Of a stretch of 64,000 nt of DNA, positions 1-37,413 are shown one piece after another. A program made the translations under genes and the position numbers. Position 1 is the first letter of the stretch. Each line of letters begins with the position of its first letter. The notes under the pieces were generated by a model, which did no database searches, had not been told where the DNA came from, and saw only the letters and a list, made by a program, of their open reading frames with translations. Source of the stretch: Mobula birostris (taxonomy: Eukaryota); the NCBI RefSeq assembly GCF_030028105.1, contig NC_092384.1, positions 3,701,665 through 3,765,664 of the forward strand. Direction: 5' to 3'.

Positions 1-233
1 CCCAATCTTCGCTCAGAACTCACTGGTGGATGTTTATTGGAGGAAAGGGGAACAAAAACAATTTATAGACGCCACTGCAGACAGAAGGATGAGGATTATA
101 ACTTCGGAGCAAGGTTCTGCCGAATTCCATATCCTCGGGGTGAGCTTCGGTGACTCTGGAATCTATTATTGCAGTGTGAGTGACTGGACAAGAAAATTTT
201 CCAATGGCAATGGCACGAGCGTTATTGTACACG
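1..233 (+). CDS. Gene 1 Ig V-set exon (germline-joined VJ type, NKp30/SIRP-like); 5' part lies upstream of the window
   Basis: Frame from nt 2 reads PIFAQNSLVDVYWRKGEQKQFIDATADRRMRIITSEQGSAEFHILGVSFGDSGIYYCSVSDWTRKFSNGNGTSVIVH. It has the V-set Trp, DSGIYYC and J-like GNGT motifs, and a phase-1 donor CACG|GTAAAT at 233/234. Confidence 0.93.
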
Positions 234-1399
234 GTAAATCTCACTCGGTGTGTCTTAGACAAATGCAACTATTAAATTTAGCGGAGCGCTTTAGATCTTG
301 ATAAAGTCGAAAAAGGGACTGCCACTCTACCCACAATAGTATTCTTCCGTTCGGGTTTGCATAACCACTCTTTACCGTTGGTGGAACAGTGTAATCCCCG
401 AAAGAACATTGTTTTCTCATTTCAAATAACTTTAAGCTCCTTTTTTATCTGGAGATTTAATTCATGGGATGTACATCTGATGAAGCACGTTAAGTCCGTA
501 GATAGGCAATTATTGAAATAGAATGTTACATGTGTTAACTGAAATTATTTCATCCGATTGTAGACCTGTGAGTTGCAGCTAATGACGTGTCTTTCGTAAG
601 CTAAGAGTTCAGCGATTACCTGCGGAATATCAAATCGATTCTGGAAAAAGTTCTAATGCTTGGTCAGCATATACAACGAATAACCGCTTCTTGGGTTTCC
701 AGCCGGGTACAAATATCAATTGTAACCGATGTATCGATTGCATACTCTGCCATTCTTAGAAAAGCCCGAGAAGAGTTTATTTGGAAACTCGAGTCTGTCT
801 GTCACTTTGCAAATGGAAAAAAAGAATAATGTTTGTTATATGTATTTAAATAATTCGCGAATGGAGAACTTCTAAACAGAATTAACTTCTAATCAGATTC
901 AGAATCAGTATTAAAATCATCGGCATACGTCGTGAAATTCGGTAACGTACCGGCAGCAGTACAATATAAAGCACAATAAAACGTAACAATATAGGAAAAA
1001 GATAAAATCAGTAAATAATTTAAAGTTGTCGTTCAGTCGTTAAGTCTTTAAGTCGAGTTCGACTCTTCGTGACGTCGTGGACCATAGGGTATACAGGGTG
1101 TTCATGGCGAGATACGGAATTAGATTGCCAGGCATTTGTCCCGCGCAGATACTGCTGCTGTCATGGCTGGTACCCGGCTGGGTTTGAACTCAGTTCCATC
1201 GGTCTTGGAGTCCAGTGCCGATGCACTGCGGTAGTGTTCATAGGTTCATTATCCATGAGAAATCGGATAGCAGAGAGGAAGAAATATTTCTTTGAATCGC
1301 AAAATGTGTCATCACGCTTTTATACCTCCTTCCTCACGATTAGAATGAGAAGTGGAAATGTCCTGGGTAATGGAAGTCCCTAATGATGGACGCAGCCCT

Positions 1400-2300
1400 C
1401 CCGAGACACTGCTACTTGAAGGTGTCATGGATACTATGGATGCTAGCACCCATGATAGAACTGACTCGTTATATAACTTACTGCAGCTTCTTTCGATCAG
1501 TACAGTAGTCGCTCCCCAGTATGCCAGGCGGTGATGCAACCTGTCAAAATGCTCTCATGGTACATGTTTAAAAGTTCTCGAGGCTCTTAGGTGACAAACC
1601 AAATCTCCTCAAATTTCCAATGAAATAAAGACACTATCTTGCCCCCATTATAGCAACGTCGATATGTTAGGACCAGGTTAGTTCCCCAGAGATATTGACA
1701 CCAAGGAACTTGAAATTGCCCACTCTCTCCAAATTTGAGGATTGGTTTATGACTCCTCTTCCTACTGTTTCTGAAGACCTCGGTCAACTTTCTTGTCTTA
1801 CTGACGTTGAGTGAAAGGTCGTTGCTGCAACTCCACTCAGCTGGTTAATATCGCTGTCTGCTGTACGTCCTCCCCTTTCCATCTGAGATTCTGCCAACAA
1901 TTGTTGTATCATTACCAAATGTATTGCTGACATTTTAGCTATTCCTAGCTACATAGCCATGGATATAGAGAGAGTAGAAAATTGGGCCAAGGGCACATTC
2001 CAGAGATGCACCAGTGTTGATCCTCAGTGAGGAGGAGTTATTGATACAAATTATTTTCTTCAGGTCAGCAAGTCGAGAATCCAATTTCAGAGTGAGGTAC
2101 AGAGACCCATAGCTTATCAATCAGACTGTAAGAATGATGGTGATAAACGCTGTAGTCAATAAACTGCAAACAGCATCGTGACAAGGTGTTGGTATTGTCC
2201 TGGTGATTTAAGGCCGTCTGATAATCCACTGATTGTGGTTCTAGTCCTGTGAGGTACCATATCAGCTGCCGTAGATTCTGATTCTGAAAAACACAGCAGC
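1400..2300. mobile_element. Rex/Babar-like LINE fragments
   Basis: Decayed pieces related to 41900-42330 and 58345-58830. Confidence 0.55.
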
Positions 2301-5300
2301 TTACACTATATGAATTCGTCCGTCAATACCTATTAGGAACCATCACACGGTTTTACAGTACCGTAGTGGTATTGACGGTTTTCTAGATTGTTCTCTGTTT
2401 TATAAAAACAACATAGTTTATTACTTAGTTTAGAATGCAGAATCTGTGCAATTCTATGCCCAATGAAGCAGTGGAGGCTACCTCAGTTAACATATTTAAG
2501 AGAAGGTTGGATAAGAGTTTTGCATATTACAGAAGTTAACGATTATGGAGAAAAATCAGGTTGATATGGAGATGAGTCCATGACCAGAGCATCCATAATC
2601 TTATTGAATGATGGAGAAGGCGCGATGGGTCAGATGGCCTTCTTCTGCTCCTATTTCTTATGTTCTTAAGTACTCAGTTATACAGTAGAAAGTGCAAAAG
2701 AGCAAAACAATGATATTATTAATTTAAACATATTAAACATTTCATGAAATTTTGCGAGTTTCAGTGGTGAATGCAGTATAGCATGTAATATAAGTTTGTC
2801 TTGGAGGCAGAGATTGGTAAAGTAAATGGCAGTATGTTTGCTCAGGATGGAAGGCAGAACACATTAAATCACACAATTGAGCATTGTACATATAATTAAT
2901 GCAACGTGTATCAAAAGATGGGTCCAAAGAAGGTAAAAATAGAAAGACTTGTTAAATTCAGAATTCCTAAATATTTAACGGTTGTAACCCTGCTTGGGAT
3001 GATATGTCCTTGTTGAAAAGCCCGGGGCATGGACTGTGGACAGACGAAATTCCTTTCTAAGCTGTCACTGGGAAATTTATAATTTATTTTGCTCAGCAAT
3101 TAAACCGTAATTTCTGGTCATCATTGTCATCAATGTATTGGAAGCAACCTATATTTAAATATGTGCCTCTTTTCACCTTGTGTCTGCATTACCGCATCAA
3201 GCAAGATTGAAAATTACTACAGCACTATGTTCCCCCCCAGAAAGGACGGTACTTTTCTTTTTGTTTCAATATTATTTTCCAGTTTTTTTTTTCCGGAGCT
3301 CAACGATGTTAGTCTGGAAAAAAAAAAAAATCCTTCTTTATATTCCGTTCTGAACGTCATGGAATTTTCATCATTTTGTTATAACTTGCTGCAGCCTCAG
3401 AGACAAAGCAAAAAAATAGAGCGTCCAAAACATTACACAAACAATGATCCGTGACATTTTAAAATAAATATTTCACCAGATTCATTTGAAATAATGGCAA
3501 ATGGTATAATACCTTTGGCAGATTTGCTTCATAAATTCTGTTCTGTTCACAAGAGAATTGCAGATTTTAGCTTTATTCTTTCATGTTTCCTGCAATTCCT
3601 GCTTATCATTTTCCTCCTGTTATTTATTCTTTTTTCATTCCCCTGGTTAAACCCGATTCCAGCAGGTCCGACATGCTGACTTCTACAATCTTGCTCTCTC
3701 GATCCTCTGCGTCCATCAAGCATTTTTTGTTTATTCCTTTACCTGCTGCAATACTATTTATTCCGTAAAGATAAGTTTACGTCAACTTCTGGAGCCATAG
3801 AGATCCTCTGATGAATATCTTCCACAGAACATCTAGGTATACAGATTCAGGATGTAGACCAGACATTCGGGTAGGATCGCTGAATTATTCCCCAGGAAGG
3901 ATGTGCTTGCGATTTGCACTGAGTGGATAACGGTATTTTTTTTTTCTTGAATTGGAAGCCGTTGCTCTACATAGGTTTGGGTTGGAGTTATGACGAAATA
4001 TCACGAAATATTTTGAGAACTCGTCAGAACGCAATCTTTCAGGCCTCTAGCAAAGTTGTCCGCAACCCTTTGTTTCAAACAAGGCAAGCATGTGGCTGAC
4101 GGTGTGTTGTGCTCAGGCTACACAGAACTTACAGCGGGTTCAGAGAATTAGAACACAGGAGTAGAACGTTGTGTGTTAAATAAGAGGAAATTTACTCTGA
4201 CACAACCAAAGAGAGGGGTCGAGTGTTTCGTCACTGGTGAGGGGTTGCAAGGATTTGGTAGTCACTGAGTTCTGTTCTTGTCTGTGAATGTTACACCTGA
4301 ACCCCGTCCGGTGAGGAAACCGCATACTGTCAGAGAGCATCAAAATGAATGACGGAAGAAACAGTTTATTAAGGAAATAATGAAATCCAAACATTATATA
4401 TTACAACACCTGAGATTCCAAGGCGTTATTGAAGGAATGACATGAAATGTCGCTAAATAACCTACACCAGAGCAACCTCACTGCGCTGCCTTTGGATCAT
4501 TAACTGTATTGATGTAGTAATGTATTCTTGTGATAGGCAACTGACAACTGGAAGCTTACTTTGAAACGATTCGCGTCTTAAGGAGCTGAGGACAATGACC
4601 AATTACAATCACGTCTTTCTTGTTGTTGCTGAATCTGACCAAGCTACACGAACGCCTGTGCTTCTGCTTAAATCGGATATTTTTTTTCTTGTTCATAACT
4701 AGATGGAGAGCAACTCTGCCGTGGATGGTCCCTAGAATGCCTGCGAAAGGAGGAGGGTTGGGCCAGAAATAATACTTACGTTAATTCTGGCTCGTTTTCT
4801 TACATCTCTGTTTTGTTTCATTTCCCATTGCCAACTATAATCAGTTTCCACTCCAAGCGGATTTGGCAAAATTATTTCTCCCCGGCAGCAAAGTCATGGT
4901 ACATTTCACCTTCCAACTTGAAAGTGAAAATGCAAATCGGCCATGATCTTTCAGTGTGTTAGAAAACATATTGTTCTTTTTCTTGCATGTTGACAGACAG
5001 GAGAAACTGCAGGAAACCAATTAACTGCTGAAATTGTAGGGTTATTAAAATGCACAAAAATAGTTTGAATTTTGTTCACACGCGTCGTAGATTTATGCAA
5101 CTTAGACCGTCACTTCTGAACCCAAATCTGACATGCAGAACACACCCCAATATCCCTAAACACATTTTCTTTTTTTTCTATTCATGCGCATGTTTGATTT
5201 TTTTTTTTTTTTTTTTGGTTTGGCATTCTCATTTTATCCCGCTTCCTCAGCTTCCTACTAGCATGTGTGTAGAAAAAAAAAACCTTTTAGGTTCAATTTA

Positions 5301-5319
5301 AACCTATGCACTTTTATTT

Positions 5320-5700
5320 AAAGTCCATCCCTCAGGTTGCAGACGCTGCAAATCTGGGAAGAAGACTTTGACTATCCACGTTATCTTGGTCCTTATAACT
5401 TCATAAGCATCTATCAGATCACCCTTCGACCTCTTTCTCTGCAGACAATGAGTCGTAGATTCTCCATGTAAATGAAACCCTCCAAACCCAGTGCTGCAGG
5501 CATTCATTCCAGATTAATGACGCCTATACTGGGGCGAGGCCAAGAGAACTACGGACAACACCTCAAGTATGTTCTCACCAACGGCTTTTGCAATTTCAGC
5601 CTGACGTCCCAATTCCTGACCAGCACAGGGAGGAATGTCAAACTGCCGTCTTCGCCATATTTCCCAACTGTGTCACTACTTTGAGGGATTAGGCACGTAC
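5320..5700 (-). mobile_element. CR1 3' fragment, reverse (paralog from about 63915)
   Basis: KGDLIDAYEV-type C-terminal ORF2 motif on the minus strand. Confidence 0.75.
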
Positions 5701-7530
5701 AGTACCAGGGTTCTGTTTATGTCAACACTCCCTATGGAACTCCCAATTACTGTTTAAGCTTTAGTTCAGTTTAATGTAGAAAATAGAGCACATCGCTATA
5801 CGTTATTTTTCGTATTGCAAACAGGTTTGTTCCGGGTAAACATGTTGGAACTAGGAGTCTTAATGCGACACCGATTAGAGCATTGTTGGATAACCAATCG
5901 TATGTGTGATGAATTCTGAGAGATTTAATTATTGCCCTTACAGGAATTTGATCAGTTGACATTTCAATGCCTGTCGATTTTACAGAATGATGTTGTGCCA
6001 CACTAATTTCAGCTAAGCATTGCAACACGCACAAGTTCCATATCCTCTCCATATATACTGATTTCCACCTCCAGTCCATTCAGATAGATATCTTTATTTC
6101 ATCCTCTCTAAATAATAACATATCATCAAACAAGTTACAGAACAGTTGATACAACACTTATTCCTGATTTTAAAGTGATATTTTTATTTCTGCTTATAAA
6201 TTGATCTGTTTTTCTCACTAAAACTAGTGTAGGATTTACACTCTGTACAAGAAGGAGATTTGTTCTCACAACAGCTTCTTGGGTTCTCTATTGCTGCTGA
6301 ATTACATTGTAAATTGATCGTTTTTTCCTTAAATGTTTTTTGATAGTAACACAATCTATTGTATTATGAATTACTCACTGCATCATTTTGCATCACTGTG
6401 TCATTAATCAAAATCTCGCACGTCCTTCTGCATTGTAAGATTTTGGCCGTTAACCATACTAGATAGTCTAGACCACCTTGCGTGCAAAACCTTCTTCCCT
6501 TAAGTTTCTCCAAGAATAGTTAACCTGCGTTTTGTTATCAACTCTTCCCGCTTTGCTTTGACTCAATCTCGCCCACCTGATTGGTTCTGTACCAATACCA
6601 ATCCGAGATGTGGAGCTGGTATCTGCAGTGAAGGTCCAAAATTCAAGGTTCAAGATTGCTTCATGTAATTTCCTGTACTCAGGTATAAAGGAGAATGAAA
6701 TAATTATTACGCAGGATCCGATACAATGCAACTAAACGCTTGATAACAACACAATTACAATAAAATACACAATAAATTTAATTGCATGCGTTAGCTAAGA
6801 GAGGTTTGCTCTACTATCAAATTATTTTTTTATATATATGTAACACGCTGTAAGTATATTGACGTGACTAAACGTGTATATATTTTCAATCGGTATGAAA
6901 ATTCGATGAAAGATATAATGGGATTCAAACTGAATTCAGTATTTGCAGAAATAATTCATTTGTTTTTGCAATAGGTACTGGGGTTCTGTTGTTTCGTCGT
7001 ATAACAATTACGGCATATAGAACATTAGAAGAATTACGAAGACCTAAGCCAAAATGCTTTACAACACAACACATTACAGAATGTGCAGAACGTTCTTACA
7101 ATGTAAATCCGATAATTTATAAAATGTGAATTTAAGGGTTAGATTAAACTAACAAAAACAAACTAACAAACTAACAAAAACAAACCATTCTTATTGTAGC
7201 TTTTTGCATGTGGAATAAAGAAAAAATAAATAGTGGTCACGGAGTCATGGGGTAACGCAGAAAGCTTTTATGTAATTTCTCCGTGATACCTTCACCTGAA
7301 ACTTCAGTGTTCTAGTCAATGAAAAAATAAAAAAAAACTAAGGAAAATGTACATCGCCACATAAAACTTCATGCTAAGATACGTAACCTGCTTGATTTGA
7401 GATTAATGTTTTCCAGTTAAATTCAAATTAACATTCCAGGTTGTGAAGAATAATTTTCTGTCAGCGATTATTTTCTCTGATAATGGTGCGTTTAGGCATG
7501 CTAGCTCTTTTTCTTTTAAATCATTTGCAG

Positions 7531-7809
7531 TTCCGCCGGTGCCGTTGAAAATCACCGAAGAGAACTCTCCTTCCGTGGCGCTGACGTGCACGACTACTGC
7601 TTTTTTCCCGAAGAACTATGAGCTCATATGGTATAAAAATGAAATGGAAATCACTTCTGGAATACATACCACACAAAAACAGAACGAGGAGGGATTATAT
7701 CTCGTTTCAAGCTCCCTCAATGTAACAGAAAGCTGGTCTGTTTATACTTGTCAGGTGTTTCATGAATCTATGAGGGCGCCAATATCCGAGTATTATAGAA
7801 TCCGATTGG
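7531..7809 (+). CDS. Gene 1 Ig C1-set exon
   Basis: Polypyrimidine tract TTTGCAG|TT, 279 nt phase 1-1, donor TTGG|GTAAGA. Reads (V)PPVPLKITEENSPSVALTCTTTAFFPKNYELIWYKNEMEITSGIHTTQKQNEEGLYLVSSSLNVTESWSVYTCQVFHESMRAPISEYYRIRL, with C1 motifs LTC...FFP...W, GLY.VSS.L.V and YTCQV.H. Confidence 0.92.
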
Positions 7810-7978
7810 GTAAGAGGCTTATATTCTCAACCGCTTGTTTTATGTCTGGCATTTATCAATCCCTCACAAACAGAGAAAAAGGGAACATATTCAAATGGGG
7901 AAAGGGAAATGTAAGGCGGTGGCTATACGAAGAAGAGTAAGATATCATATTATACTGCTGCTGTTTCCTGCTTCAAGG

Positions 7979-7984
7979 AATAAA
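7979..7984 (+). terminator. Candidate intronic polyadenylation signal after the C1 read-through stop
   Basis: AATAAA 38 nt after the in-frame TAA at 7938-7940. Motif only. Confidence 0.3.
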
Positions 7985-9001
7985 ATATGCAACAAAAATG
8001 GCGTAACTCCTTTACTTTTCCATATCAAGTATTTCTAAATCCCTGTTATCGACAATGCAGATTTGCCTTTTTTAATGTTACTTTACCTTTGCACAATCAG
8101 ATTCACTGAATTATATGATCACTGAATTATATGACCTGATATGAGTTGTTGTTTGGCAGTTGTACAATGCAGTCATAGACCATAAGTTATAGTGCAGTCA
8201 TAAGTTACATATATAAATCAGTAGTACAAAAATGTTTGCGTATGGAAAGAAAATGTTTCATATCGGTGTGTGGGGGTCTTCAGTTATCTCCTCCACCACG
8301 GAGCAAAGTGAAGAATGCATGCACTTTCGACTTCATCTCTAACAGAAATATACTTTCCTGGATCTTCTGTAACGCGTCGCAATCTTACTGCAATTGAACA
8401 CAATATCACAATATCAAAGACCATAGTTCAATAAAAATGCAGCATGACTTCACTTCTTTTAATTCCATATTTCTACCGACGAATGGCATAAGCCTTTTTA
8501 TCAACTTCGCAACTTACCCTGACATGTTATTATCAATAAAAGTAAGCACTTTTTCCGTTCATCTGGTTTAAAACAACATATTGATATCCCTAATTCTGCA
8601 CACCAAGCTGCTACACCTTATATTAGCCTGCCTGCCTATTATATCAGAGCTCGTATCTGCTAAATTTTGCCGGCACAACTCACAACACTACCTAGAAATT
8701 CTGTTTTGCGCCATCTTATTCTTTGACCTGAGATCGCTTGCGTGTATTTTCCAGCCCTCGTTTCAATCCATGCCTTGTCAACTTATTCAACAGTACAGAA
8801 TTATTGATGAAAGTAAGCGGAATTAAATGTTGATATTATTACTTATTAATGTCCTACGTATATCCACGTTTTATTTAAATTTGCAAGTTATTACTAAGGC
8901 AATTAGGTCAAGCTGTGAAAGAAAATATGGATCGCCTTCTTTACGTTCAATTGTTTAATCTGTTTAAAATGCTAATGTTTGACTTCTATTGCACACCTCA
9001 G

Positions 9002-9112
9002 GAAGCAGAGACAAGTTCATCTTAATCCTGACGGGTGCACTTGCAGCATGCGGAGCCATTATCCTAGTGCTGTTGTTACTTATGAGGCGCTGCAGAGTAG
9101 ACAGGACTGAAG
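9002..9112 (+). CDS. Gene 1 transmembrane exon (no charged TM residue)
   Basis: Acceptor CCTCAG|GA, donor GAAG|GTAAGA, 111 nt phase 1-1. Reads GSRDKFILILTGALAACGAIILVLLLLMRRCRVDRTE: a hydrophobic stretch followed by an RR stop-transfer. Confidence 0.88.
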
Positions 9113-9601
9113 GTAAGACGTTACAATGCCCTGGCCCATATTTAGTTTCACTAGCATATTGGAGTTAAAATGGCCGTGAGAAGGGTAAAACATCCATGAT
9201 GAGAAATACGTTTAGGTAGATGTGCTTGAGAGTCTATCTGACAGCTGAGTGTTGTGTGCAGAACAAGATTTAAAACGCATTTTACTCGATGTTACTGAAT
9301 TTTGCAACAACTAAAAACGGTATTGTTAACTCTGCAAGAAATGTTACAAATTTAGAACGTTTGTTGCCGCAGGACAACATATGCCAGCCACAGAGTTTGA
9401 GTAATTCTAGGCAATACAATAGGTCATTTTTTTATTACCAGTAACATCATCATTGGGTGGTTTGATAAAATGACAAGAATGGCATCAGATCACTGGCCTA
9501 TTTCGAACGGATCTGGTTGCTCCCGGAATATTCAATAACATTCGGTGCGCCTGTTCACATGCTGAGGATGAAATTGGTCACTTTTTTATTTCCTCTATTA
9601 G

Positions 9602-9645
9602 CAGCGGAAAATGATGAGAACTTAAGTCGCTACCTGGAAAATCAG
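9602..9645 (+). CDS. Gene 1 short cytoplasmic exon (Cyt1)
   Basis: Pyrimidine tract plus TAG/CAG tandem acceptor, donor CAG|GTAAGA, phase 1-0. Reads AAENDENLSRYLENQ. A paralog at 35546 keeps the same splice sites. Confidence 0.8.
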
Positions 9646-9734
9646 GTAAGATTAATATTATTATGACATATACAGGGGTTTACATATTTTGTACATACAC
9701 CTAATATCAGTAACACATAATTAGAGCAACAGAA

Positions 9735-10335
9735 TGGCTGTCACTTTGCGTGTAACACCTTATGTTCTAGGATCGCATGGTTCATTTTTGTTTTGTATCT
9801 CTGGCTTATGTAGTGCAGCATCTTCAGTGATATATTTATTCAGAGGAGTTTCACAAGGACAATTCCAGGAATGAAAGCTGTATCACACGAGGGAAGTTTG
9901 ATGACTCTGCATCTGTACTTGCTGGAATTCAAAAGGCTGAGGGGGATCTTACTGAAACCTTTCGAATGTTGAAAGGCCTAGACAAAGTAGATGTGGAAAT
10001 GATGTTTCCCGTGGTCGGAGAGTCTCGGACAAGACAGCAAAGCCTCAGGATAGACGGGCGCCCTTCCAGACCGAGAGGCGGAGAATGTTCTTTAGCCAAA
10101 AGTTGTGATTTTTTTTTCCCCGCATATCGCTGTGTAGGCCAATTCATTAGGTGTATTTAAGGCAGAGATGGACAGGCTCTTGATTGAACATGGCATCAAA
10201 AGTTACGGGAAGAAGGCCGGGAACTGGAGTTCAGGAGAAGAAAGTAAATGATTAGGCATGGTTGAATGGCAGAGCAAACTCGATGGGCCATATGGCTTAA
10301 TTCTGCTCCTATGTCTTATGGTCTTCTGGTCTTAT
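9735..10335 (+). mobile_element. CR1 3' end fragment (paralog about 35690-36280)
   Basis: MLKGLDKVDVEMMFPVVGESRTR and a typical CR1 tail. Confidence 0.85.
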
Positions 10336-10491
10336 TCAGGAACTCGTTAAGTTATCCAAGTCACTACATTTGATATTTTAACTAATCAGACTGAATGTGC
10401 GTGAATCATTTTACTTGAGTCCAGTCATTTTCTAATTGGACATTAATACTAACAAAATAAAGGTTAGGTCGGTAGCTACTGCAGTGGCATG

Positions 10492-10670
10492 CAATTGTTT
10501 GGACACCCCGGCCAAAATTTCTGTTACTGTGAATAGTTAAGTGAGTACAAGATGAACTGATCTCCAAAAGTCATAAAGTTAAATATGAAACATTATTTTC
10601 AACATTTTAAATTTAGAGTATTATTGTTGTTTTCTACAATTTTAGAGTGAAAAAATGAAAGGAGACAAAA
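10492..10670 (+). mobile_element. Tc1/mariner left end (TIR), continued at about 16785
   Basis: CAGTGGCATGCAA..TTTGGACACCCC TIR. The paralogous copy at 36416 is uninterrupted. Confidence 0.75.
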
Positions 10671-11189
10671 GGTCGCGATTTTGTGCAATTTGTTGCCACT
10701 TATAGCTGTGGAGGCCAGGTCATTGGTTGTATTTAAGGCAGAGATGGATTGATTCTTGATTGAGCATGGCATCAAAGGTTACGGGGACAAGGCCGGGAAC
10801 TAGAGTTGAGGAGGAGAAAATAAAGCAGAGCAGACTCGATGGGCCAGATGGCTTAATTCTACTCTGTGTCTTATGGTCTTATGATCTTATTCAGGAGCTG
10901 TTGAAGTTCCTGGTGCATTTGATATTTTTACCTTATCGGACTGAACCTGCGTGAATCATTTTACTTGAGGCCCATAATTTTCTATTTGGGCATTCGTACT
11001 AACAAAGTAATGTTTAGGATGGTAGATGGTGCTAATATTTGAGAGATTATGGTGTCGACGTCGTCAGACCCCACGACATGGGCGTCATCTTTAGAACGTG
11101 TCGACATCATAATCTGTCAGAATTCAGCACTAGACACCCTTCTATTTATTTCGTTAGTATATACGCACACACACACGTACACTTGCAAA

Positions 11190-12005
11190 GTGTATGGTTA
11201 TGCACATTGGCAGAAGAAATAAATGGACAGACTATTATTTAAATGGGAAGAGAATTCAAACTACTGAGATGCAACAGGACAGGGGAGTCCTCGTGCAGGA
11301 TACCCTTAAGGTTAAACTCCAGGTTGACTCGGTGGTGAAGAGGGCGAATGCAATGTTGGCATTTATTTCTAGAGGAATAGAGTACACTCGCAGGGATGTG
11401 ATGCTGAGGCTCTATAAGGCGCTGGTAAGACCTCACTTGGAGTACTGTGGGCACTTTTGGCCTCTTTTTTTTTTAAGAAAGGATGTGCTGATGTTGTAGA
11501 GGGTACAGAGAAGATTCACTAGAATGAGTCCGGGAATGAGAAGGTTAACATGTGTGGTACGTTTTCCCGCTCTCGGACTGTATTCCTTGGAGTTTAGAAG
11601 AATGAGGGGGACCTCATAGAAACATTCGGAATGTTGAAAGGCATGGACAGAGTGGATGTGGCAAAGTTGTTTCCCATGATGGGGGAGTCTGGAACGAGAC
11701 GTCATGACTTGAGGATTGAAGGGCGCCCATTCAGAACAGAGATGCGAAGATTTTTATTTTAGCCAGAGGGTGGTGAATCTATGGAATTTGTTGCCACAGG
11801 CGGCAGTGGAGGCCAAGTCATTGGGAGTATTTAAGGCAAAGATTGATATGTATCTGAGCAGTCAGGTCATCAAAGGTTATGGTGAGAAGGCGGGAGAATG
11901 GGACTAAATTGGAGAATGGATCAACTCATGATAAAATGGCCGAGCAGACTCGATGGGCCGAATGGACGAATTCTGCTCCTTTATCTTATGGTCTTATGGT
12001 CCTTA
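11190..12005 (+). mobile_element. CR1 3' fragment
   Basis: LYKALVRPHLEYC motif and CR1 tail. Confidence 0.88.
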
Positions 12006-12137
12006 TATATATTATATATTTATGCCATCATCATATCGATGCAATTACAAGGAAGGCATGGCAGAAACTATATTTGATTTGGAGTTTGAAGAGATTCGGC
12101 ATGTTATCAAAGACACTAGCAAGTCTGTACAGATATA

Positions 12138-13476
12138 CAGTGCCATGCAAAAGTTTTGGCACCCCGGTCAAAATTTCTGTTACTGTGCATAACTAAGCGA
12201 GTTAAAGATGACACATTTATTTAAAATTTAAACAGGATTACTTTTTCATTTCCATCGTTTGCAGTTTCAAAATAACAAAAAAAGAAAAGGTCCCGAAATA
12301 AAAGTTTGGGCACCCTGCATGGTCAGTACATAGAAACACCCTCTTTGGTAAGTATCACAGCTCGTAATCGCTTTTTGTAGCCAGCTAAGTGTCCTTCCAT
12401 TGTTGGGGTGATTTTCGCCAATTCTCCATGCAAAAGGCTTGTAGTTCTGTGAGATTCTTGGGCAATCTTGAACACACTGCTCCTTTGAGGTCTATCCATA
12501 AATTTTCGATGATGTTAAGGTCGGGGGACTGTAAGGACCATGGCAAAACTTTCAGCTTGCGCCTCTTGAGGTAGTCCGTTCTGGATTTTAATGTGTGTTT
12601 AAGATCATTATCCTGTTGTAGAAACCATCCTCTTTTCCTCTTCTGCTTTTTTGCAGACGGGGTGATGTTTGCTTCCATTATTTGCTGGTATTTAATTGAA
12701 TTCGTTCTTCCCTCTACTAGTGAAATCCTTCCCGTGCCCCCGGCTGCAACACAAGCTCAAAGCATGATCGATCCACCCCCGTGCTTAACAGTTGGGAGAG
12801 GTGTTCTTTTCATGAAATTCTCCACACGTTTTTCCCAAGCATACCTTTGCTTATTGTGGCCATAAAGTTCTATTTTAACTTCATCAGTCGACAGAACTTA
12901 TTTTCAAAATGCATCAGGCTTGTTTAGATGTTACTTTTCAAATGTGTGACGCTGACGTTTGTGGTGAGGATGCCGGAAAGGTTTTGGAGAACAAAGGATG
13001 TAGAATTGGATGAACAGTACCCCTCTCCAACTGTTAAGCGCGGGGTTGGACTAATCATGTTTTGGGCTTGTGTTGCAGCCAGTGACACAGGGAACATTTC
13101 ACTTGTAGAGGGAAGAATGAATTCAATTAATACCAGCAATTTCAGGAAGCAAACATCACACCGTCTGTAAAGAAGCTGAAGATAAAAAGAGAATGGCTTC
13201 TACAACAGGACAATGATACAGGGACTAAGGATCGATTAAAAAGAATCGATCTGTGATTATTAGTGCATGAAAGAGCGACCCTGTGAAGTCTACCAGTGTG
13301 TCTAACACTTGCCTGGTTTGGTAGATTATCACTTGAAGACGGCGCTCTGAAGTTGGTCACGTTTGGCCAACTTGGAAGTTTGGGAGGACATCGAAGAGGA
13401 TCGACGACGCCTGTCTACTTGGATTACGAGTCTCTCTGTCTCTCTCTGTCTCTCTCTGTCTCTCTCTGTCTCTGTC

Positions 13477-13515
<39 letters not shown>

Positions 13516-14030
13516 AATCCCGTGGACAGAACTGAATATCCTTACCACACTATCGTAAGACTGTATCAATTACCATCTAAGTTTGAAGAAGTTTGGGTTT
13601 TGTATTTAAACACCTATATATGAATAAACTCTGCTAACCTGTTTGATTTTCTGGCTTTATGTTACTCTATTACATAGCTACTAATACAATAGTGTTAGTT
13701 AACAGCAAAACCACACTCCAGGTGTCTTCCATTTTGCTGGTTCTTTTAAGCACGTTACGGGGTATGTAACTGTGGATAGCCCGCAAAAGAGCAGTGGATG
13801 CAAGACGGCCCAAGAATCATACAGAGCTAGAAGCCTTTTGCACAGAAGAATGGGCGGAAATCCCCCAAACAAGAATGGAAAGACTTTTAGCTGTCTGCAA
13901 AAAGCGTTTACAAGCTGTGATACTTGCCGAAGGGGGTGTTACTAAGTACTGACCAAGCAGGGTGGCCAATCTTTTGTTTCAGGCCCTTTTGTTATTTGGA
14001 AACTGTAAAAGATGGAAATAAAAATGTAAT
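12138..14030. mobile_element. Rearranged Tc1 fragments in both orientations
   Basis: TIR at 12138. A reverse-strand fragment reads FLQQDNDLKH...WSLQSPDLNIIENLW (12385-12678), and forward-strand fragments lie at 12960-13220 and 13790-14030. Confidence 0.8.
13431..13513. repeat. (TC)n/(TCTCTG)n microsatellite
   Basis: Direct reading. Confidence 0.95.
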
Positions 14031-14049
14031 ACTATTACAGCTACAGAAA

Positions 14050-16665
14050 GTGTGGGTAATGAAGCAGGATCTTCTTTTGAGTCAGTATGGGTGGAAGACA
14101 GGAACAGGAAGGAAGCAGTTACTCTATTGGGGGTATTCTACAGGCCCCCTGGTAGCAGCAGAGACACAGAGGAGCAGATTGGGTGACGGATTTTGGAAAG
14201 GTGCAAATATAACAGTGTTGTTGTCATGGGTGACTTTAACTTCCATAATATTGATTGGCACCTGATTAGGTTCAAGGGTTTATATGGGACAGAGTTTGGT
14301 AAATGTGTCCAGGACGGATTCCTGTCACAGTATGTGGACACGCCGACTAGGGGAAATGCCATACTAGATCTATTACAAGGTAATGAACAGGATCAGGTCA
14401 CAGAACTCTCAGTGGGTGAGCACTTGGGGGACAGTGACCACCACTCCCTGGCCGTTAGCATTATCATACAAAAGGATTGAATCAGAGAGGACAGTTTTTT
14501 TTTTAATTGGGGAAGGGCAAATTATGAGGCTAGAAGGCCAGAACCTGCTGGTGTGAATTGTGAAGATGTTTTTGAAGGGAAATATACCATGGACATGTGG
14601 TCGATGTTTAGAGATCTCTTGGAAGACGTGAGGGATAAGCATGTCCCGGTGAGGAAGATAAAGAATGGTAGGATGAAGTAACCATGGGTCACAAGTGCGG
14701 TGGAATATCTAGTCAGGTGGAAGAAGGCAGCATACATGAGGTTTAGGAAGCAAGGATCAGATGGGTCTATTGGGGAATATAGGGATTCAAGAAAGGAGCT
14801 TAGGAAGGGGCTGAGAAGAGCAAGAAGGGGGCATGAGAAGGCCTTGGCGAGTACGGTAAAGGAAAACCCCAAGACATTCTTCAATTATGTGAAGAACAAA
14901 AGCACGACAGGAGTGAAGGTAGGACCGATTAGAGATAAAAGTGCGAAGATGTGCCTGGAGGGTGTGGAAGTGAGCAAGGTCCTCAATGAATACTTTTCTT
15001 CGGTACTCACCAATGAGAGGGAATTTGATGATGGAGAGGACAATATGAGTGAGGTTGATGTTCTTGAGCATGCTGATATTAAGGGAGAGGATGTGTTGGA
15101 ACTGTTAAAATACATTAGGACGGATAAGTCCCCGGGGTCTGACGGAATATTCCCCCAGGCTGCTCCGCTAGGCAAGGGAGGAGATTACTGAGCCTCTGGC
15201 TAGGATCTTTATGTCCTCGTTGTCCACGGGGATGGTACCGGAGGTCTGGAGGGTGGCGAATATTGCCTCCTTGTTCAAAAAAGGTAGTAGGGATAGTCCG
15301 GGTAATTATAGACCAGTGAGCCTTGCGTCTGCTGTGGGAAATCTGTTGGAAAAGATTCTTCGAGATAGGATCTATGGGCATTTAGAGAATCATGGTCTGA
15401 TCAGGGACAGTCAGCATGGCTTTGTGAAGGGCAGATCGTGTCTAGCAAGCCTGATAATGTTCTTTGAGGAGGTGACCAGGCATATAGATGAAGGAAGTGC
15501 AGTGGATGTGATCTATATGAATTTTAGTAAGGCATTTGAAAAAAGTACCACACGGTACCTTCAGAAAGTCAGAAGGAATGGGATCCAGGGAAGTTTGGCC
15601 AGGTGGATTCAGAATTTGCTTGCCTGCATAGGGTAGAGGGTCGTGGTGGAGGGAGTACATTCAGATTGGAGGATTGTGACTAGTGGTGTCCCACAAGCAT
15701 CTGTTCTGTGATCTGTACCTTTCGTGATTTTTATTAACGAACTGGATGTGGGGTTAAAAGGGTGGGTTGGCAATTTTGCAGACGACACAAAGGTTGGTGG
15801 TGTTGTACATAGTGTAGAGGATTGTCGAAGATTGCAGACAGACATTGATATGATGCAGAAGTGGGCTGAGAAGTGGCAGATGGAATTCACTCCGTAGAAG
15901 TGTGAGGTGGTACACTTTGGAAAGATAAACTCCAAGGCAGCGTACAAAGTGAATGGCAGGATGCTTGGTAGTGTGGGGGAGCAGAGACATCTTTGGCACA
16001 TGTCCACAAATTCCTGCAGGTTGCATCACTTGTGGATAGGGTAGTGAAGAAAGTTTATGGGGTGTTAGCTTTCATAAGTCGAGGGATAGAGTTTAAGAGT
16101 CGCGATGTAATGATGCAGCTCTATAAAACTCTGGTTAGGCCACACTTGGAGTACTGTGTCCAGTTCTGGTCGCCTCACTATAGGAAGGATGTGGAAACAT
16201 TGGAAAGGGTGCAGAGGAGAATTACCAGGATGCTGCCTGGTTTAGAGAGTATGCATTATGATCAGAGATTGAGGGAGCTAGGACTTTACTCTTTGCAGAG
16301 AAGGAGGATGAGAGGAGACATGATAGAGCTGTACAAGGTAATAAGAGGAATAGATAGAGTGGATAGCCAGCTCCTCTTCTCCAGGGCACCACTGCTCAAT
16401 ACATGAGGACATGGCTTTAAGGTAAGGGGTGGGAAGTTCAAGGGGGGTATTAGAGGAAGGTTTTTTATTCAGCGAGTGGTTGGTGTATGGAATGCACTCC
16501 CTGAGTCAGTAGTGGGGGCAGATACACTAGTGAAGTTTAAGAACGTACTAGACAGTTATATGGAGGAATTTAAGTTGGGGGGTTATATTGGAGGCAGGGT
16601 TTGAGGATCGGCACAACATTGTGGGCCGAAGGGTCTGTACTATTCTATGCTATATGTTCTATGTA
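14050..16665 (+). mobile_element. CR1-type LINE, decayed ORF2 through 3' UTR
   Basis: Endonuclease motifs (VMGDFNF, SDH) and RT motifs (PGNYRPVSL, SQHGF, VDVIYMNFSKAF, LVRPHLEYCVQFWSP), broken by frameshifts. Confidence 0.92.
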
Positions 16666-16784
16666 ATCTTGCTTAAAATATTAAAGAAGTGTGTCATCTT
16701 TAATTTTATTCCCTTATGGTAACCAGGTAATCTATTACTCGCTCTGCTATTCACATAACAGAAATTTTGGCCGGGGTGCACTCG

Positions 16785-18043
16785 CTGTTAGGGCTATGGC
16801 TTGTCGCAATCATCGTTAGCAAACGCAAGGTGATGCAAATTTCAAAGCTTCATAAATGCCCTGACTACTCAATCCCTGTGCCAACAAAAGCATCCATGGG
16901 CTCCTATAAGCAGCGACCTAGCACTCTGAAAATTAAATTAAATGACGCCCAGAAAGCTGGAGAAGGGAAGGCTATAAGAAGATAGCGAAGCGTTTTCGGG
17001 TAGCTGTTTCCTCAGCCTGTAATGTAATTAGGAAATGACAGTTAACAGGTACAGTGGAGGTCAAATTAAGGTCTGGAAGACCAAGAAAACTTTCCAAGAG
17101 AACTGCTCGTAGGTTTGTTAGAAAGGCAAATCAACACTCACGTTTGACTTCAAAAGACGTTCAGGAAGATTTAGCAGACTCTAGTGGTGGTACACTGTTC
17201 TACTGTGCAGCGATATCTGCACAAATATAACCTTCATGGAGGAGTTATCAGAAGAAAACGTTTCCTGCGTCCTCACCATAAAAGTCAGCATCAGACGTTT
17301 GCAAAGTAACATCTAAACTAGCCTGATGCATTTTGAATACAAGTCCTGTGGACTGATGAAGTTAAGATAGGACTTTTTGGCCGCAATAAGCAAAGGTATA
17401 TTTAGAGTAAAAAAAAAAGGTGAGAAATTTCCTGAAAGAAACATCTCTCCCACTGTTAAGCACGGGGTGGATTGATCATGATTTGAGCTTGTGTTGCAGC
17501 CAGCGGCACGGAGACCATTACACCGGTAGAGGGAGGAATGAATTCAATTACATACCAGCAAATTCCGGAAGCAAACATCACACAGTCTGTAAAAAAGCTG
17601 AAGATGGAAAGAGGATGACTTCTACAACAGGATAATGATCCTGAATACACTTGAAAGTCCTCAATGGACTGCCTCAAGAGGCGCAACTGAGGATATCGTC
17701 ATGGCCCTCACAGTCCCCTGACATAAACATCATTGAAATTCAAAAGAGCAGTGCATGCAAGACGGCCCAAGAATCTCACAGAACTAGATACCTGCCAAAG
17801 TGGTTGTTACTAAGTACTGACAGGCAGGGTGCCCAAACTTTTGCTTCGGGCCCTTTTCCTTTGTTTTTTTTGGTATTTTCAATCTGTAAAAGATGGAAAT
17901 AAAAAAGTAAGCATGCTTAAAATATTAAAGAAATGCGTCATCTTTAACTTTACGTCTTTTCGAAATCAGGTCATCTTTTACTCGCGTATTCACAGTAACA
18001 GAAATTTTGAACAGGGATGCCCAAACATTTGCATGCCACTGTA
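16785..18043 (+). mobile_element. Tc1/mariner body and right TIR, decayed transposase
   Basis: HTH-region fragments, QQDNDP-like and WPSQSPDINIIE motifs, ending TTTGCATGCCACTG|TA. Confidence 0.85.
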
Positions 18044-18260
18044 TATATAGGCGAATACACGAGCTCACCAACTGTTTGGGAAAATCAGACGGACTGTTTT
18101 TTTTTTCTGTATACATTTATATCTTCCAATTTCCGTCAAGTAATCATGCGTTTCACAGGAATACAATGCACTGAAGGTACGATTAATCTTGTTTTCTGAT
18201 CCACAGTGTGTTGGTTATTGCAGAGTTAATTGAAATATAAAAAAAAATTGTTTTTCTCAG

Positions 18261-18377
18261 GCTTCCGAAATTCAGGATATCGGCAGTCCTTCTTATGCAG
18301 ATCTAGACTTTAGAAGGGATAATAAAAACAAGGAAGTCAGATCTGAAGCCGAACTCACTAATGCACTGGTAAGATAA
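18261..18377 (+). CDS. Gene 1 terminal cytoplasmic exon (Cyt2) with ITIM-like YADL
   Basis: Acceptor TTTTTCTCAG|GCT, phase 0 matching Cyt1. Reads ASEIQDIGSPSYADLDFRRDNKNKEVRSEAELTNALVR* with TAA at 18375-18377. Confidence 0.8.
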   Translation, partial: ASEIQDIGSPSYADLDFRRDNKNKEVRSEAELTNALVR

Positions 18378-18563
18378 AAGAGAGAGTTCACCGCACAAAT
18401 CAGTTTTTCAAAGTACTGGATCAGCAGCTCTTTACCTCTAATTATTGTTTCCACAGATCATACAAGGAACTGAGGATAAATTGATGTATGCATGCGTGAA
18501 TCTCGCCGCTTCTCAGAAAAACGCAAGAAGAGTGCAGAAGACTCATGGGACCGAGTATGCAGG

Positions 18564-18569
18564 AATAAA
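18564..18569 (+). terminator. Candidate polyadenylation signal of gene 1 (paralog 37597-37602)
   Basis: AATAAA about 190 nt after the stop, conserved in the duplicate. Motif only. Confidence 0.35.
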
Positions 18570-19259
18570 GATAAAGGAAAAGGCGAGAAAGCTGGAGACG
18601 AAAAGAGCACCATATAGCGATTGATAACTGTATTACACGTTACTGGCCATCGTCGTGTCCCAAGATCAATCATACTCTGTTACTGTTTCGAAACAACTGT
18701 GGAGTAAGCACAGGATTTTAATGAGAAATCACCAACTCCAACAAAACAAAAAAGCTACGGTTAATGGACCATTGAATCGGAGATTGTATTCGGGACAGCA
18801 AGAATATAGAAACGAAATCCCTATTAGCAGGCTTGGGCCCGCATCACACGACACTTTCCTATGTAATCGCTAGTTCAAATACATTTTAAGTGTTGGCTGT
18901 ATCTGCCTCCACAACCTTCCGGGCAGCTCATTCCAAATAAACTACACCCTATTACTTAAATACACACTCTTCTTTTAAAACTCAACACCATCATTTCAAA
19001 CAGTTCCTCTCAAGTTCTGGACTCCCCTGCCGTAGTAAAATTGCACTGTCTGTCTGCATTACATGTGCCTCTCATACGTAAATTAACTGACACAAAATCA
19101 TCCTCAACTTCGTAATCCGAACCTATCCAACTGCTCCTTACAACAACATTTCACTATTTCAGGCATCATCTATGATTCTTTTCTGATATCTCACCACTGT
19201 TCCACGTCTTGCGGAGAATGTAAATCTTCAGAATACATTAGCTTATATTTTGTCCAGCT

Positions 19260-27465: not shown

Positions 27466-27595
27466 NNNNNNNNNNNNNNNNNNNNNNNNNNNNNNNNNNN
27501 NNNNNNNNNNNNNNNNNNNNNNNNNNNNNNNNNNNNNNNNNNNNNNNNNNNNNNNNNNNNNNNNNNNNNNNNNNNNNNNNNNNNNNNNNNNNNNN
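27466..27595. other. Assembly gap (130 N)
   Basis: Run of N; the true length is unknown. Confidence 1.
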
Positions 27596-28636: not shown

Positions 28637-31600
28637 TGTCATGGTCCGGTCCGTGAAGTCCGCATTCCGGTTCATGGTCTGGTCCGTGGACTCAGGACTC
28701 CGGGTCTTCTAGCTGTCCCTAGATTGACTAAATCAAAGGCACCTGATTCCCATCTTTGGGATGGCAACATAAGCAGCCTTGGGATTGCGTGTGGGCTGCT
28801 GGTTTGTCTTGTCAGTCCCCCTTAGAACAATCTGCTGGTGGAAGGTTAGTGAAACCATTTGTGATCTCTAGGCCTGGTTAGAGCACAACTGCTTCATGGA
28901 GCCTTGTTGCCACTTGTTGGAGCTGTCTTTGCGGTTTGGATTCGGCTGGTTCCCGGGCCAGCTGAGTGGCTGCCAGCCACTCCGAGCTAGGGAGGGATCC
29001 GGCTGTTTCTGTAGCCAGCTGAGGTTGCTGGCTGAACTGAGACTCGGAGCTACCCCGGAGCAGAGATGGAACTGTCTGTTGTTCTTTGGTGTTTGTCTTT
29101 TCTTGTCCTCGCCTCCGTAGGGTAAGTCAGGCCGTCTTGTCGTTGCCCTGCGGGGGGACCTGCCTTGTCTTTGCCTCTGTTGGGTAAGTCTGGCTGCCCT
29201 GCCATTACCCAACAGATGGACCTGTCACACCCTGCTGTGGAGTAGTTTGACTCCCAACTTGTCTTATGATAAGCCCCGGCTCTATATCTACGTTCCGTCC
29301 TGTCTCATGTTAGTCTCGTGTTAAAGATGTCCCGCCTTGTCGAAGGATAAGTCCCCACTCTAGGCTGATGTTTAGTTCCCAGTCTGTGTCTGAGCTCTGA
29401 GAACCCAGGCCTCGACGATCCCGCAGCCAAGCTCCTAGAACCCCAGCCTCGACGGTCCAGCAGCCAAGCTCCAAGAAGCCCAGACTCGAGAATCCCGCAG
29501 CCAAGATCCAAGAACCCCAGCCTCGAGGATCTCGCAGCCAAGCTCCAAGAGCCCCAGCCTCGAGGATCTCGCAGCCAAGCTCCAAGAGCCCCAGCCTCGA
29601 GGATCTCGCAGCCAAGCTCCAAGAGCCCCAACCTCGAGGATCTCGCAGCCAAGCTCCAAGAGCCCGAGCCTCGAGGATCTCGCAGCCAAGCTCCACGAGC
29701 CCCAGCCTCGAGGATCTCGCAGCCAAGCTCCACGAGCCCCAGCCTCGAGGATCTCGCAGCCAAGCTCCACGAGCCCCAGCCTCGAGGATCTCGCAGCCAA
29801 GCTCCACGAGCCCCAGCCTCGAGGATCTCGCAGCCAAGCTCCACGAGCCCCAGCCTCGAGGATCTCGCAGCCAAGCTCCACGAGCCCCAGCCTCGAGGAT
29901 CTCGCAGCCAAGCTCCACGAGCCCCAGCCTCGTGGATCTCGCAGCCAAGCTCCACGAGCCCCAGCCTCCAGGATCTCGCAGCCAAGCTCCACGAGCCCCA
30001 GCCTCGAGGATCTCGCAGCCAAGCTCCACGAGCCCCAGCCTCGAGGATCTCGCAGCCAAGCTCCACGAGCCCCAGCCTCGAGGATCTCGCAGCCAAGCTC
30101 CACGAGCCCCAGCCTCGAGGATCTCGCAGCCAAGCTCCACGAGCCCCAGCCTCGAGGATCCCGCAGCCAAGCTCCACGAGCCCCAGCCTCGAGGATCCCG
30201 CAGCCAAGCTCCAAGAGCCCCAGCCTCGAGGATCCCGCAGCCAAGCTCCAAGAGCCCCAGCCTCGAGGATCCCGCAGCCAAGCTCCAAGAGCCCCAGCCT
30301 CGAGGATCCCGCAGCCAAGCTCCAAGAGCCCCAGCCTCGAGGATCCCGCAGCCAAGCTCCAAGAGCCCCAGCCTCGAGGATCCCGCAGCCAAGCTCCAAG
30401 AGCCCCAGCCTCGAGGATCTCGCTCCAAGAGCCCCAGCCTCGAGGATCTCGCAGCCAAGCTCCAAGAGCCCCAGCCTCGAGGATCTCGCAGCCAAGCTCC
30501 ACGAGCCCCAGCCTCGAGGATCTCGCAACCAAGTTCCACGAGCCCCAGCCTCGAGGATCTCGCAGCCAAGCTCCACGAGCCCCAGCCTCGTGGATCTCGC
30601 AGCCAAGCTCCACGAGCCCCAGCCTCGAGGATCTCGCAGCCAAGCTCCACGAGCCCCATACCTCGAGGATCTCGCAGCCAAGCTCCACGAGCCCCAGCCT
30701 CGAGGATCTCGCAGCCAAGCTCCACGAGCCCCAGCCTCGAGGATCTCGCAGCCAAGCTCCACGAGCCCCAGCCTCGAGGATCTCGCAGCCAAGCTCCACG
30801 AGCCCCAGCCTCGAGGATCTCGCAGCCAAGCTCCACGAGCCCCAGCCTCGAGGATCTCGCAGCCAAGCTCCACGAGCCCCAGCCTCGAGGATCTCGCAGC
30901 CAAGCTCCACGAGCCCCAGCCTCGAGGATCTCGCAGCCAAGCTCCACGAGCCCCAGCCTCGAGGATCTCGCAGCCAAGCTCCGCGAGCCCCAGCCTCGAG
31001 GATCTCGCAGCCAACCTCCAAGAGCCCCTGCCTCGTGGATCTCGCAGCCAAGCTCCGCGAGCCCCAGCCTCGAGGATCTCGCAGCCAAGCTCCACGAGCC
31101 CCAGCCTCGAGGATCTCGCAGCCAAGCTCCACGAGCCCCAGCCTCGAGGATCTCGCAGCCAAGCTCCACGAGCCCCAGCCTCGAGGATCTCGCAGCCAAG
31201 CTCCACGAGCCCCAGCCTCGAGGATCTCGCAGCCAAGCTCCACGAGCCCCAGCCTCGAGGATCTCGCAGCCAAGCTCCACGAGCCCCAGCCTCGAGGATC
31301 TCGCAGCCAAGCTCCACGAGCCCCAGCCTCGAGGATCTCGCAGCCAAGCTCCACGAGCCCCAGCCTCGAGGATCACGCAGCCAAGCTCCACGAGCCCCAG
31401 CCTCGAGGATCTCGCAGCCAAGCTCCAAGAACCCCAGCCTCGTGGATCTCGCAACCAAGCACCAAGAACCCCAGCCTCGTGGATCTCGCAGCCAAGCTCC
31501 AAGAACCCCAGCCTCGAGGATCCCGGGGCAATGTCATGTCCTTGCCTGGATCTGACGTCGGAGCAGTCCGAGGCAAGACTCGGTTTCTGGGTCCTTGTCC

Positions 31601-35230: not shown

Positions 35231-35545
35231 AACTCTTTGCTCCGTCTACAGTTTTTACCGTTTGTGTATTGTTAACTCTGCAAGAAGTGTTACAAATTTA
35301 GAGTGTTTGTTGCCGCAGAAGAACATGTGCCAGCCACAGAGTTGAATAATTCTAGGCAGTACACTAGGTCATTTTTCATCACCAGTAATATCAGCATTTG
35401 GGTGCTTTGATAAAATGACAATAATGACATTACATCACTGGCCGATTTCGAACGGATCTTGTTGCTTCTGGATTATGTAATCGCATTCGGTGCACCTGTT
35501 CAAACGCTGAGGATGAAATTAGTCACTTTTTATTTCCTCTAGTAG

Positions 35546-35589
35546 CAGCTGAAAATGATGAGACCTTAAGTCGCTACCAGGAAAATCAG
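35546..35589 (+). CDS. Duplicated short cytoplasmic exon (Cyt1')
   Basis: Same 44-nt length and phase as 9602-9645, intact AG and CAG|GTAAGA. Reads AAENDETLSRYQENQ. Confidence 0.65.
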
Positions 35590-37296: not shown

Positions 37297-37413
37297 GCAT
37301 CGGAAAGACAAGATGTCGGCAGTCCTTCTTATGCGGATCTAAACTTTAAAAGCGATAATAAAAACAAGGAAGTCAGATCTGAAGCCGAACTCACTAATGC
37401 ACTGGTAAGATAA
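37297..37413 (+). CDS. Duplicated terminal cytoplasmic exon (Cyt2')
   Basis: Acceptor TTTTTCTCAG|GCA. Reads ASERQDVGSPSYADLNFKSDNKNKEVRSEAELTNALVR*, with an intact frame. Confidence 0.65.
   Translation, partial: ASERQDVGSPSYADLNFKSDNKNKEVRSEAELTNALVR

Follow-up and report, generated by a model that had tools for sequence, protein, structure and literature searches.

Introduction

What kind of receptor is encoded at the left end of a 64,000-nucleotide stretch of the genome of the giant manta ray Mobula birostris (contig NC_092384.1, positions 3,701,665 to 3,765,664; hereafter the window), and where does it belong among the receptors of the immunoglobulin (Ig) superfamily? A preliminary description, made from the letters alone, had joined five exons spread over some 18 kb into a non-rearranging receptor: a V domain ending in a joining (J)-like strand, a C1-set domain, a transmembrane (TM) segment and a cytoplasmic tail carrying an ITIM (immunoreceptor tyrosine-based inhibitory motif). 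It saw in this gene a combination of NKp30 (NCR3) and SIRP-alpha, and a likeness to the proposed pre-RAG 'VJ-C1' ancestor of antigen receptors. We consider it likely that the locus is a type I receptor gene of six coding exons, that it is one of a family found across the cartilaginous fishes and sister to the SIRPs of bony vertebrates, and that its product is an inhibitory receptor that recruits SHP phosphatases. The gene is not a new kind of molecule.

Results

Six coding exons form one transcribed gene

The five exons originally proposed (2-233, 7531-7809, 9002-9112, 9602-9645 and 18261-18377) do join into one open frame, with AG/GT sites at every boundary, but the gene continues beyond them. 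The true 3' boundary of exon 5 is 18368, directly followed by a GTAAGA donor, rather than 18377, so that the 'VR*' stop is intronic sequence, and a sixth coding exon, missed before, contributes 55 codons and the stop (Table 1). At the other end, the window begins within the V exon, and the leader and codons 1-48 lie about 0.37 kb upstream of that point; the part inside the window closes with the J-like G strand SNGNGTSVIVH and a GT donor in phase 1. The 3' untranslated region (UTR) extends to at least 18979. Contrary to the view that the gene had escaped annotation, the six-exon model derived from the window is identical to a public prediction of 361 aa (P0157). A second public isoform of 268 aa (P0162) lacks the C1 exon and lies on the same 86.2-Mb contig of GCA_030028105.1, and both isoforms of the gene are thus already predicted in public annotation. 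When the C1 exon served as query in an exhaustive protein search, it recovered a protein of 361 aa from Mobula birostris with 86% identity.

The RNA evidence comes from contigs of four public runs of one study that hold the locus, and these contigs cover exons and not introns. Two joints, 7809>9002 and 9112>9602, are read directly in contigs from three runs. In addition, a loose end at 7530 carries the last 29 bases of the V exon, and an overhang after 9645 carries the first bases of exon 5. Because two joints are direct and the overhangs match the end of exon 1 and the start of exon 5, all four junctions anticipated earlier (233>7531, 7809>9002, 9112>9602 and 9645>18261) hold. The splice into the additional exon, 18368>18457, is present in contigs of three runs. 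A further contig joins the end of the V exon to 9002 and so represents a C1-skipping form that matches P0162. We also considered a processed retrocopy as the source of spliced sequence in run X2, which is flagged 'probably DNA', and rejected it: X2 has spliced contigs made of exons only, with no introns, and we read it as RNA.

One contig documents a second variant. A strong cryptic GTGAGT donor sits directly after the YYCS codons, where the V segments of rearranging receptors end, and its use removes 57 nt in frame, equivalent to 19 residues that make up the loop resembling complementarity-determining region 3 and the G strand. The loose end of X3 at 7531 reads bases 147-176, at a depth of 3.4 as against 10.9, and the transcript is a minor product. 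Separately, we observed a contig that runs from exon 4 at 9645 straight into exon-6-like sequence, and this sequence has two base differences to each of the window's two copies. It corresponds to a paralogue in which exon 5 is skipped or missing, as in P0160 of M. hypostoma.

A germline-joined V domain, a single C1 domain and an inhibitory-type tail

The second exon encodes a C1-set domain (PF07654), which Pfam scores at 50.6-53.1 bits against a cut-off of 21, some 20 bits above the C2-set_2 (CD80-like) match to the same protein (30-33 bits). The truncated first exon is recognised on its own as a V-set fragment, and the full protein scores 41 bits as V-set against a cut-off of 26. In the AlphaFold model two confident Ig domains are followed by a TM helix and a disordered tail; as stated in the preliminary description, the TM segment (residues 224-246) contains no charged residue. 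V and J-like strand share a single exon that ends in a splice donor, and a search for recombination signal sequences (RSS) found no heptamer-nonamer at the end of V. CACAGTG heptamers near V exons occur only in the 5' coding part of two V cassettes further downstream, and we rejected these as RSS as no nonamer accompanies them. To judge from its sequence, then, the V domain is VJ-type and non-rearranging, and the layout originally proposed, a non-rearranging V(J-like)-C1-TM receptor with a tail of inhibitory type, stands. The dN/dS values did not reveal positive selection: they are 0.48-0.85 when the window's three V exons are compared with one another, and 0.31 in tail exon 5.

It is in the details of the tail that the earlier account needs revision. 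Two tyrosines had been counted and YADL had been taken for the ITIM. The complete tail holds five tyrosines, and PSYADL (Y282), with proline at position -2, misses the ITIM consensus [ILVS]xYxx[ILV] and is ITIM-like only. Position -2 of this motif is V or L in many relatives (the chimaera members shown and several sharks) and P in other sharks. The canonical motifs lie in the exon that had been missed: LMYACV (Y317) is a canonical ITIM and TEYAGI (Y340) an ITSM (immunoreceptor tyrosine-based switch motif). Counting as a pair an ITIM and a TxYxx[IV] motif placed 20-30 residues apart, we find one such pair here, with a spacing of 23 residues. A module of the form LxYAxx[LV]-23 residues-[TA]EYAx[IL] is found across much of the family, and a lungfish SIRP-alpha-like protein has a matching one (ITYATL-23-TEYAEV). 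The ITSM consensus of PD-1 is (T/V)EYATI, and the SH2 binding residues of SHP-1, SHP-2 as well as SHP-2L are conserved from sharks to mammals (PMC12151841).

A family across the cartilaginous fishes

The gene was thought to belong to a multigene family, and this is borne out both by tandem family members in the window and by relatives throughout the cartilaginous fishes. Proteins of this layout occur in rays, skates, many sharks and a chimaera. The relatives come from rays and skates (Mobula, Hemitrygon, Amblyraja, Leucoraja, Narcine), from sharks (Heterodontus, Heptranchias, Carcharodon, Cetorhinus, Scyliorhinus, Chiloscyllium, Stegostoma, Mustelus) and from the chimaera Callorhinchus. Their automatic names conflict: most are called SIRP-alpha-like, others tapasin-related-like, CD276 homolog, NCR3LG1-like, Ig lambda-like or MHC-like. 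Across an alignment of 17 members the D-x-G-x-Y-x-C of the V domain, the J-like G-x-G and the cysteines and tryptophan of the C1 domain are invariant. The C1 domain is duplicated in one skate model only, and the window gene has one C1 exon. Word-indexed protein searches returned cartilaginous-fish members and one weak teleost match, and no SIRP or NCR3 references. In full-text searches, whose coverage did not extend to the shark NCR3 paper, no publication on a SIRP-like V-C1-ITIM family of chondrichthyans came up.

Not all members share the tail. Four relatives (P0163, P0024, P0071 and P0146) have an arginine in the TM segment and no tyrosine tail, and because some members are built in this way, the family probably works as inhibitory/activating pairs, in the manner of SIRP-alpha and SIRP-beta.

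The tail also stands out in a comparison of paralogues. P0002, on the same contig, has a tail that is 100% identical in protein to that of the window gene and a V domain that is only 72% identical. A cross-species orthologue shows the reverse, with 93% identity in V and 84% in the tail. As far as can be read from sequence, this contrast suggests gene conversion of tails or the sharing of tail exons.

The C1 domain is sister to that of SIRPs

To place the family we rely chiefly on a maximum-likelihood tree of 65 C1 domains (about 100 columns). The C1 domains of the family are monophyletic (support 99/95) and form a clade with 16 sarcopterygian (lungfish and coelacanth) SIRP C1 domains (97/86), within which the family is sister to the SIRP domains, not nested among them. 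Outside this clade fall Ig lambda C, the C1-set domains of one teleost Ig-like protein, the multi-C1 UrIg2-like proteins, beta-2-microglobulin-like domains and MHC-I alpha-3. The coelacanth reference is a genuine SIRP, scoring 181 bits to human SIRP-alpha.

Profile searches point in the same direction. With hidden Markov models of the family, coelacanth and lungfish SIRPs come top among named references (53-54 bits for C1, 26-30 bits for V), the coelacanth SIRP V being the best V match outside the family at 30 bits. Against the PDB, the family profile aligns collinearly with domains d1-d2 of human SIRP-alpha at 59.0 bits (2WNG), and within the five top-ranked chains with per-domain alignments listed, no single C1 scores higher than SIRP-alpha d3 (43.7 bits). 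The top named clusters in the ESM Atlas are SIRP-alpha-like and SIRP alpha, each at 0.96. Taken with the shared ITIM-23-ITSM module, tree and profile match uphold the view that C1 domain and tail are SIRP-like.

Other features of the window

Downstream of the gene lies a second set of three cytoplasmic exons, whose DNA identity to the first gene's tail is about 92%; the copy at 37.3 kb keeps the open exon that follows downstream, with an in-frame indel of 3 nt. The 16 kb upstream of this second set, a stretch that contains an assembly gap (27466-27595) and satellite, yielded no V, C1 or TM exon. A contig of X1 passes from the 3' UTR of the first gene into that of the second copy at 18979, which could reflect either transcription of the second tail copy or a chimeric contig. 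Near the far end of the window, the V exons of two tandem cassettes differ at 10 non-synonymous and 4 synonymous sites, and the first of them has a disrupted J-like G-x-G (QSNGT). Exons for C1, TM and tail to which these cassettes would be spliced fall past the window end. Long open reading frames (ORFs) on both strands between 29.3 and 31.6 kb are spurious and owe their existence to the 37-bp satellite; the remaining ORFs in the window have no Pfam match.

Table 1. Coordinates of the receptor gene and of other elements in the window
Feature	Position	Strand	Remarks
V exon, 3' part	1..233	+	reading frame from base 2; covers residues 49-125 of the 361-aa protein
Cryptic donor GTGAGT in V exon	177..182	+	RNA loose end in X3
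C1-set exon	7531..7809	+	phase 1-1; begins VPPVPLKI; Pfam, RNA joint 7809>9002 (X1, X2), C1 tree
Stalk, uncharged TM helix and membrane-proximal basic stretch	9002..9112	+	AlphaFold helix 221-257; joints in X1-X3
Cytoplasmic exon 1, AENDENLSRYLENQ	9602..9645	+	joint 9112>9602 in three runs
Cytoplasmic exon 2, ITIM-like PSYADL (Y282)	18261..18368	+	loose ends 9646 and 18257; joint 18368>18457
Cytoplasmic exon 3, ITIM LMYACV (Y317) and ITSM TEYAGI (Y340)	18457..18624	+	stop 18622-18624
37-bp satellite	29404-31522		57 copies, 96% matching, GC-rich
Second set of three cytoplasmic exons	35545-35589, 37297-37404, 37493-37657		open frames, AG/GT sites
Two tandem leader-plus-V cassettes	57519-58142, 60221-60844		about 2.7 kb apart

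Discussion

How might such a receptor work? The order of parts is a leader, a germline-joined VJ-type V domain, one C1-set domain, an uncharged TM segment and a disordered tail. From this receptor anatomy and from established ITIM/ITSM biology we infer an inhibitory mechanism, including ligand binding, phosphatase recruitment and the cell type in which these would take place. The V domain would bind a putative cell-surface ligand, whereupon Src-family kinases would phosphorylate Y317 in the ITIM and Y340 in the ITSM. Lying 23 residues apart, the two phosphotyrosines could then dock SHP-1, SHP-2 or SHP-2L by its tandem SH2 domains, and activation of the leukocyte that carries the receptor would be dampened. 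Skipping of the C1 exon yields a shorter V-TM-tail form with the shape of NKp30.

Several points weigh against a place beside the SIRPs. Support for the SIRP group itself is only 85/72 in the C1 tree, which was built without references for T cell receptor (TCR) C, Ig heavy-chain C, tapasin, B7-H6 and MHC II. Ig light chains score slightly above SIRP-alpha with the family profile (65.6 and 61.8 vs 59.0 bits). The V domain finds its best structural matches in NKp30, CD79B and CD8-beta and not in SIRP, and Foldseek does not discriminate when given the two-domain model, with PD-L1, CD276, SIRP-alpha, butyrophilins, TAPBPL and B7-H6 all within 1e-14 to 1e-18. A 2026 survey, moreover, places the origin of the SIRP family in tetrapods (PMC13262535). 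Finally, the ectodomain of SIRP-alpha has two C1 domains where that of the manta gene has one.

Could the gene instead belong to the NCR3 (NKp30) family of sharks, which Kinlein et al. reportedly described in 2021, and have acquired or retained a C1 exon, with the C1-less isoform as its NKp30-like form? We regard this as rather unlikely, even though the V domain taken alone does resemble NKp30, as the preliminary description had claimed. The V-only AlphaFold model (pLDDT 84) has its best structural matches in CD79B, NKp30, CD8-beta and TCR V; five NCR3 orthologues are among its top 21 Swiss-Prot Foldseek matches and have the highest TM-scores (0.69-0.74, at 18-24% identity), and by E-value NKp30 is second after CD79B. 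The G strand carries GNGT, and a V-TM-tail isoform is both annotated and present in RNA. The Foldseek margins that separate NKp30 from CD79B, CD8-beta and TCR V are narrow, however (1e-9 to 5e-8), and GNGT is no specific mark of NKp30 in that the G strand of coelacanth SIRP has GNGS. The C1 domain groups with SIRP, and an uncharged TM segment with an ITIM/ITSM tail is the opposite of the NKp30 design. If the locus were a relic of the pre-RAG VJ-C1 precursor, closer to Ig and TCR than to any innate receptor, we might understand why a single exon holds both V and J without any RSS, why a single-sequence search of the PDB with V returns shark IgNAR V and TCR V-alpha as best matches, and why the collinear V-C1 matches of the family profile are led by Ig lambda and Ig kappa, with UrIg2 V-C1 at 54.7 bits. 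Antibodies, however, overwhelmingly populate the PDB and dominate such results, and Ig light chains, SIRP-alpha and UrIg2 score about equally (55-66 bits), only a few bits apart, which shows no special nearness to antigen receptors, and the C1 tree separates the family from Ig lambda C and from UrIg2-like proteins. UrIg and UrIg2, the candidates published for such a precursor, contain at least three C1 domains (PMC12227049). The idea of a special ancestral relic is not supported in the form in which it was first put, and we judge it improbable.

Some of the automatic names (CD276 homolog, NCR3LG1-like) imply yet another identity, that of a B7/butyrophilin-type ligand with V-C ectodomain, TM segment and short tail. 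PD-L1 (7e-18) and CD276 (6e-17) are indeed the top Swiss-Prot Foldseek matches of the two-domain model, and Pfam does report the C2-set_2 match described above. That match falls well short of the C1-set score, however, the tail has an ITIM/ITSM pair that is conserved, among non-Ig PDB chains it is SIRP-alpha and not B7 proteins that the family profile ranks, and the ESM Atlas puts SIRP clusters first, all of which makes a B7-type ligand highly improbable. Returning to the SIRP-like inhibitory receptor that we favour, an NKp30-like V domain on a SIRP-like body is a fair description of similarity. It does not amount to a unique hybrid: the gene belongs to a family present throughout the cartilaginous fishes, the C1 domain of this family is sister to that of SIRP, and the gene is best filed as a SIRP-like lineage, neither hybrid nor ancestor.

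A broader scenario, which we find doubtful, would make the family co-orthologous to the SIRPs of bony vertebrates and, in view of its NKp30-like V domain, derive both SIRP and NKp30 from one VJ-C1 inhibitory receptor, the NKp30 type arising through loss of the C1 exon. If it were true, the origin of the SIRP lineage would move from tetrapods back to the ancestor of jawed vertebrates, and the C1-skipping isoform would be a living model of C1 loss toward NKp30-type receptors. Our analysis provides a first piece of evidence for a sister relationship between the C1 domains of the family and of SIRP, which suggests that SIRP-type paired receptors predate the split between cartilaginous and bony fishes, whereas the recent survey has them begin in tetrapods. 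The picture of antigen-receptor origin is unchanged. What comparative immunology gains is a checked, RNA-supported gene model for a single member of a large and inconsistently named family.

Comparison with known receptor systems

Like SIRP-alpha, the manta gene combines a VJ-type V domain with C1-set structure and an uncharged TM segment, and its tail shares the ITIM-type motifs xTYAxL and TEYAx[IV], at a distance of about 23 residues; members of its family with a charged TM segment and no tail recall SIRP-beta. It differs from SIRP in that SIRP-alpha has four tyrosine motifs where rays have two to three, in a V domain structurally nearer NKp30, and in sharing only 26% identity with coelacanth SIRP over V-C1. 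NKp30 itself has no C1 domain and no ITIM, and uses an arginine in its TM segment to pair with CD3-zeta or FcR-gamma. The likeness here lies in a VJ-type V domain that does not rearrange and whose G strand is of the GNGT type, and in the V-stalk-TM shape of the C1-less manta isoform, the difference in the C1 domain of the main isoform, the uncharged TM segment and the inhibitory-type ITIM/ITSM tail.

With Ig light chains and TCR the gene shares a V-C1 two-domain ectodomain and the G-x-G bulge of the G strand, and these provide the top PDB fold and profile matches. In contrast to them it has no RSS, V and J occupy one exon, and the protein is membrane-anchored with a signalling tail of its own; nor is Ig lambda C the nearest neighbour of the family's C domain in the tree. 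UrIg and UrIg2, also treated in PMC10751288, are non-rearranging VJ-C1 genes of elasmobranchs; their C1 domains number three to eleven, and they lack an ITIM tail (PMC12227049). They resemble the manta gene in that C1-set exon(s) follow a VJ exon joined in the germline and in being restricted to cartilaginous fish, and differ from it in that the manta gene has a single C1 and an ITIM tail, the multi-C1 proteins separating in the tree. In passing, we note elasmobranch proteins from other loci (P0001 and P0003-P0005; 900-1600 aa, with 7-13 tandem C1 domains, at least one of them from Mobula birostris) that are labelled 'titin-like' or 'uncharacterized' and look like UrIg2 orthologues, their V domains ending in WCGCG-type strands.

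As regards the tail, a further comparison is with PD-1 and BTLA. The ectodomain of PD-1 is unrelated, consisting of a single V and no C1, but in both receptors an ITIM is likewise followed, about 23-25 residues on, by (T/V)EYAxI, an arrangement that engages the tandem SH2 domains of SHP-2 (PMC12151841).

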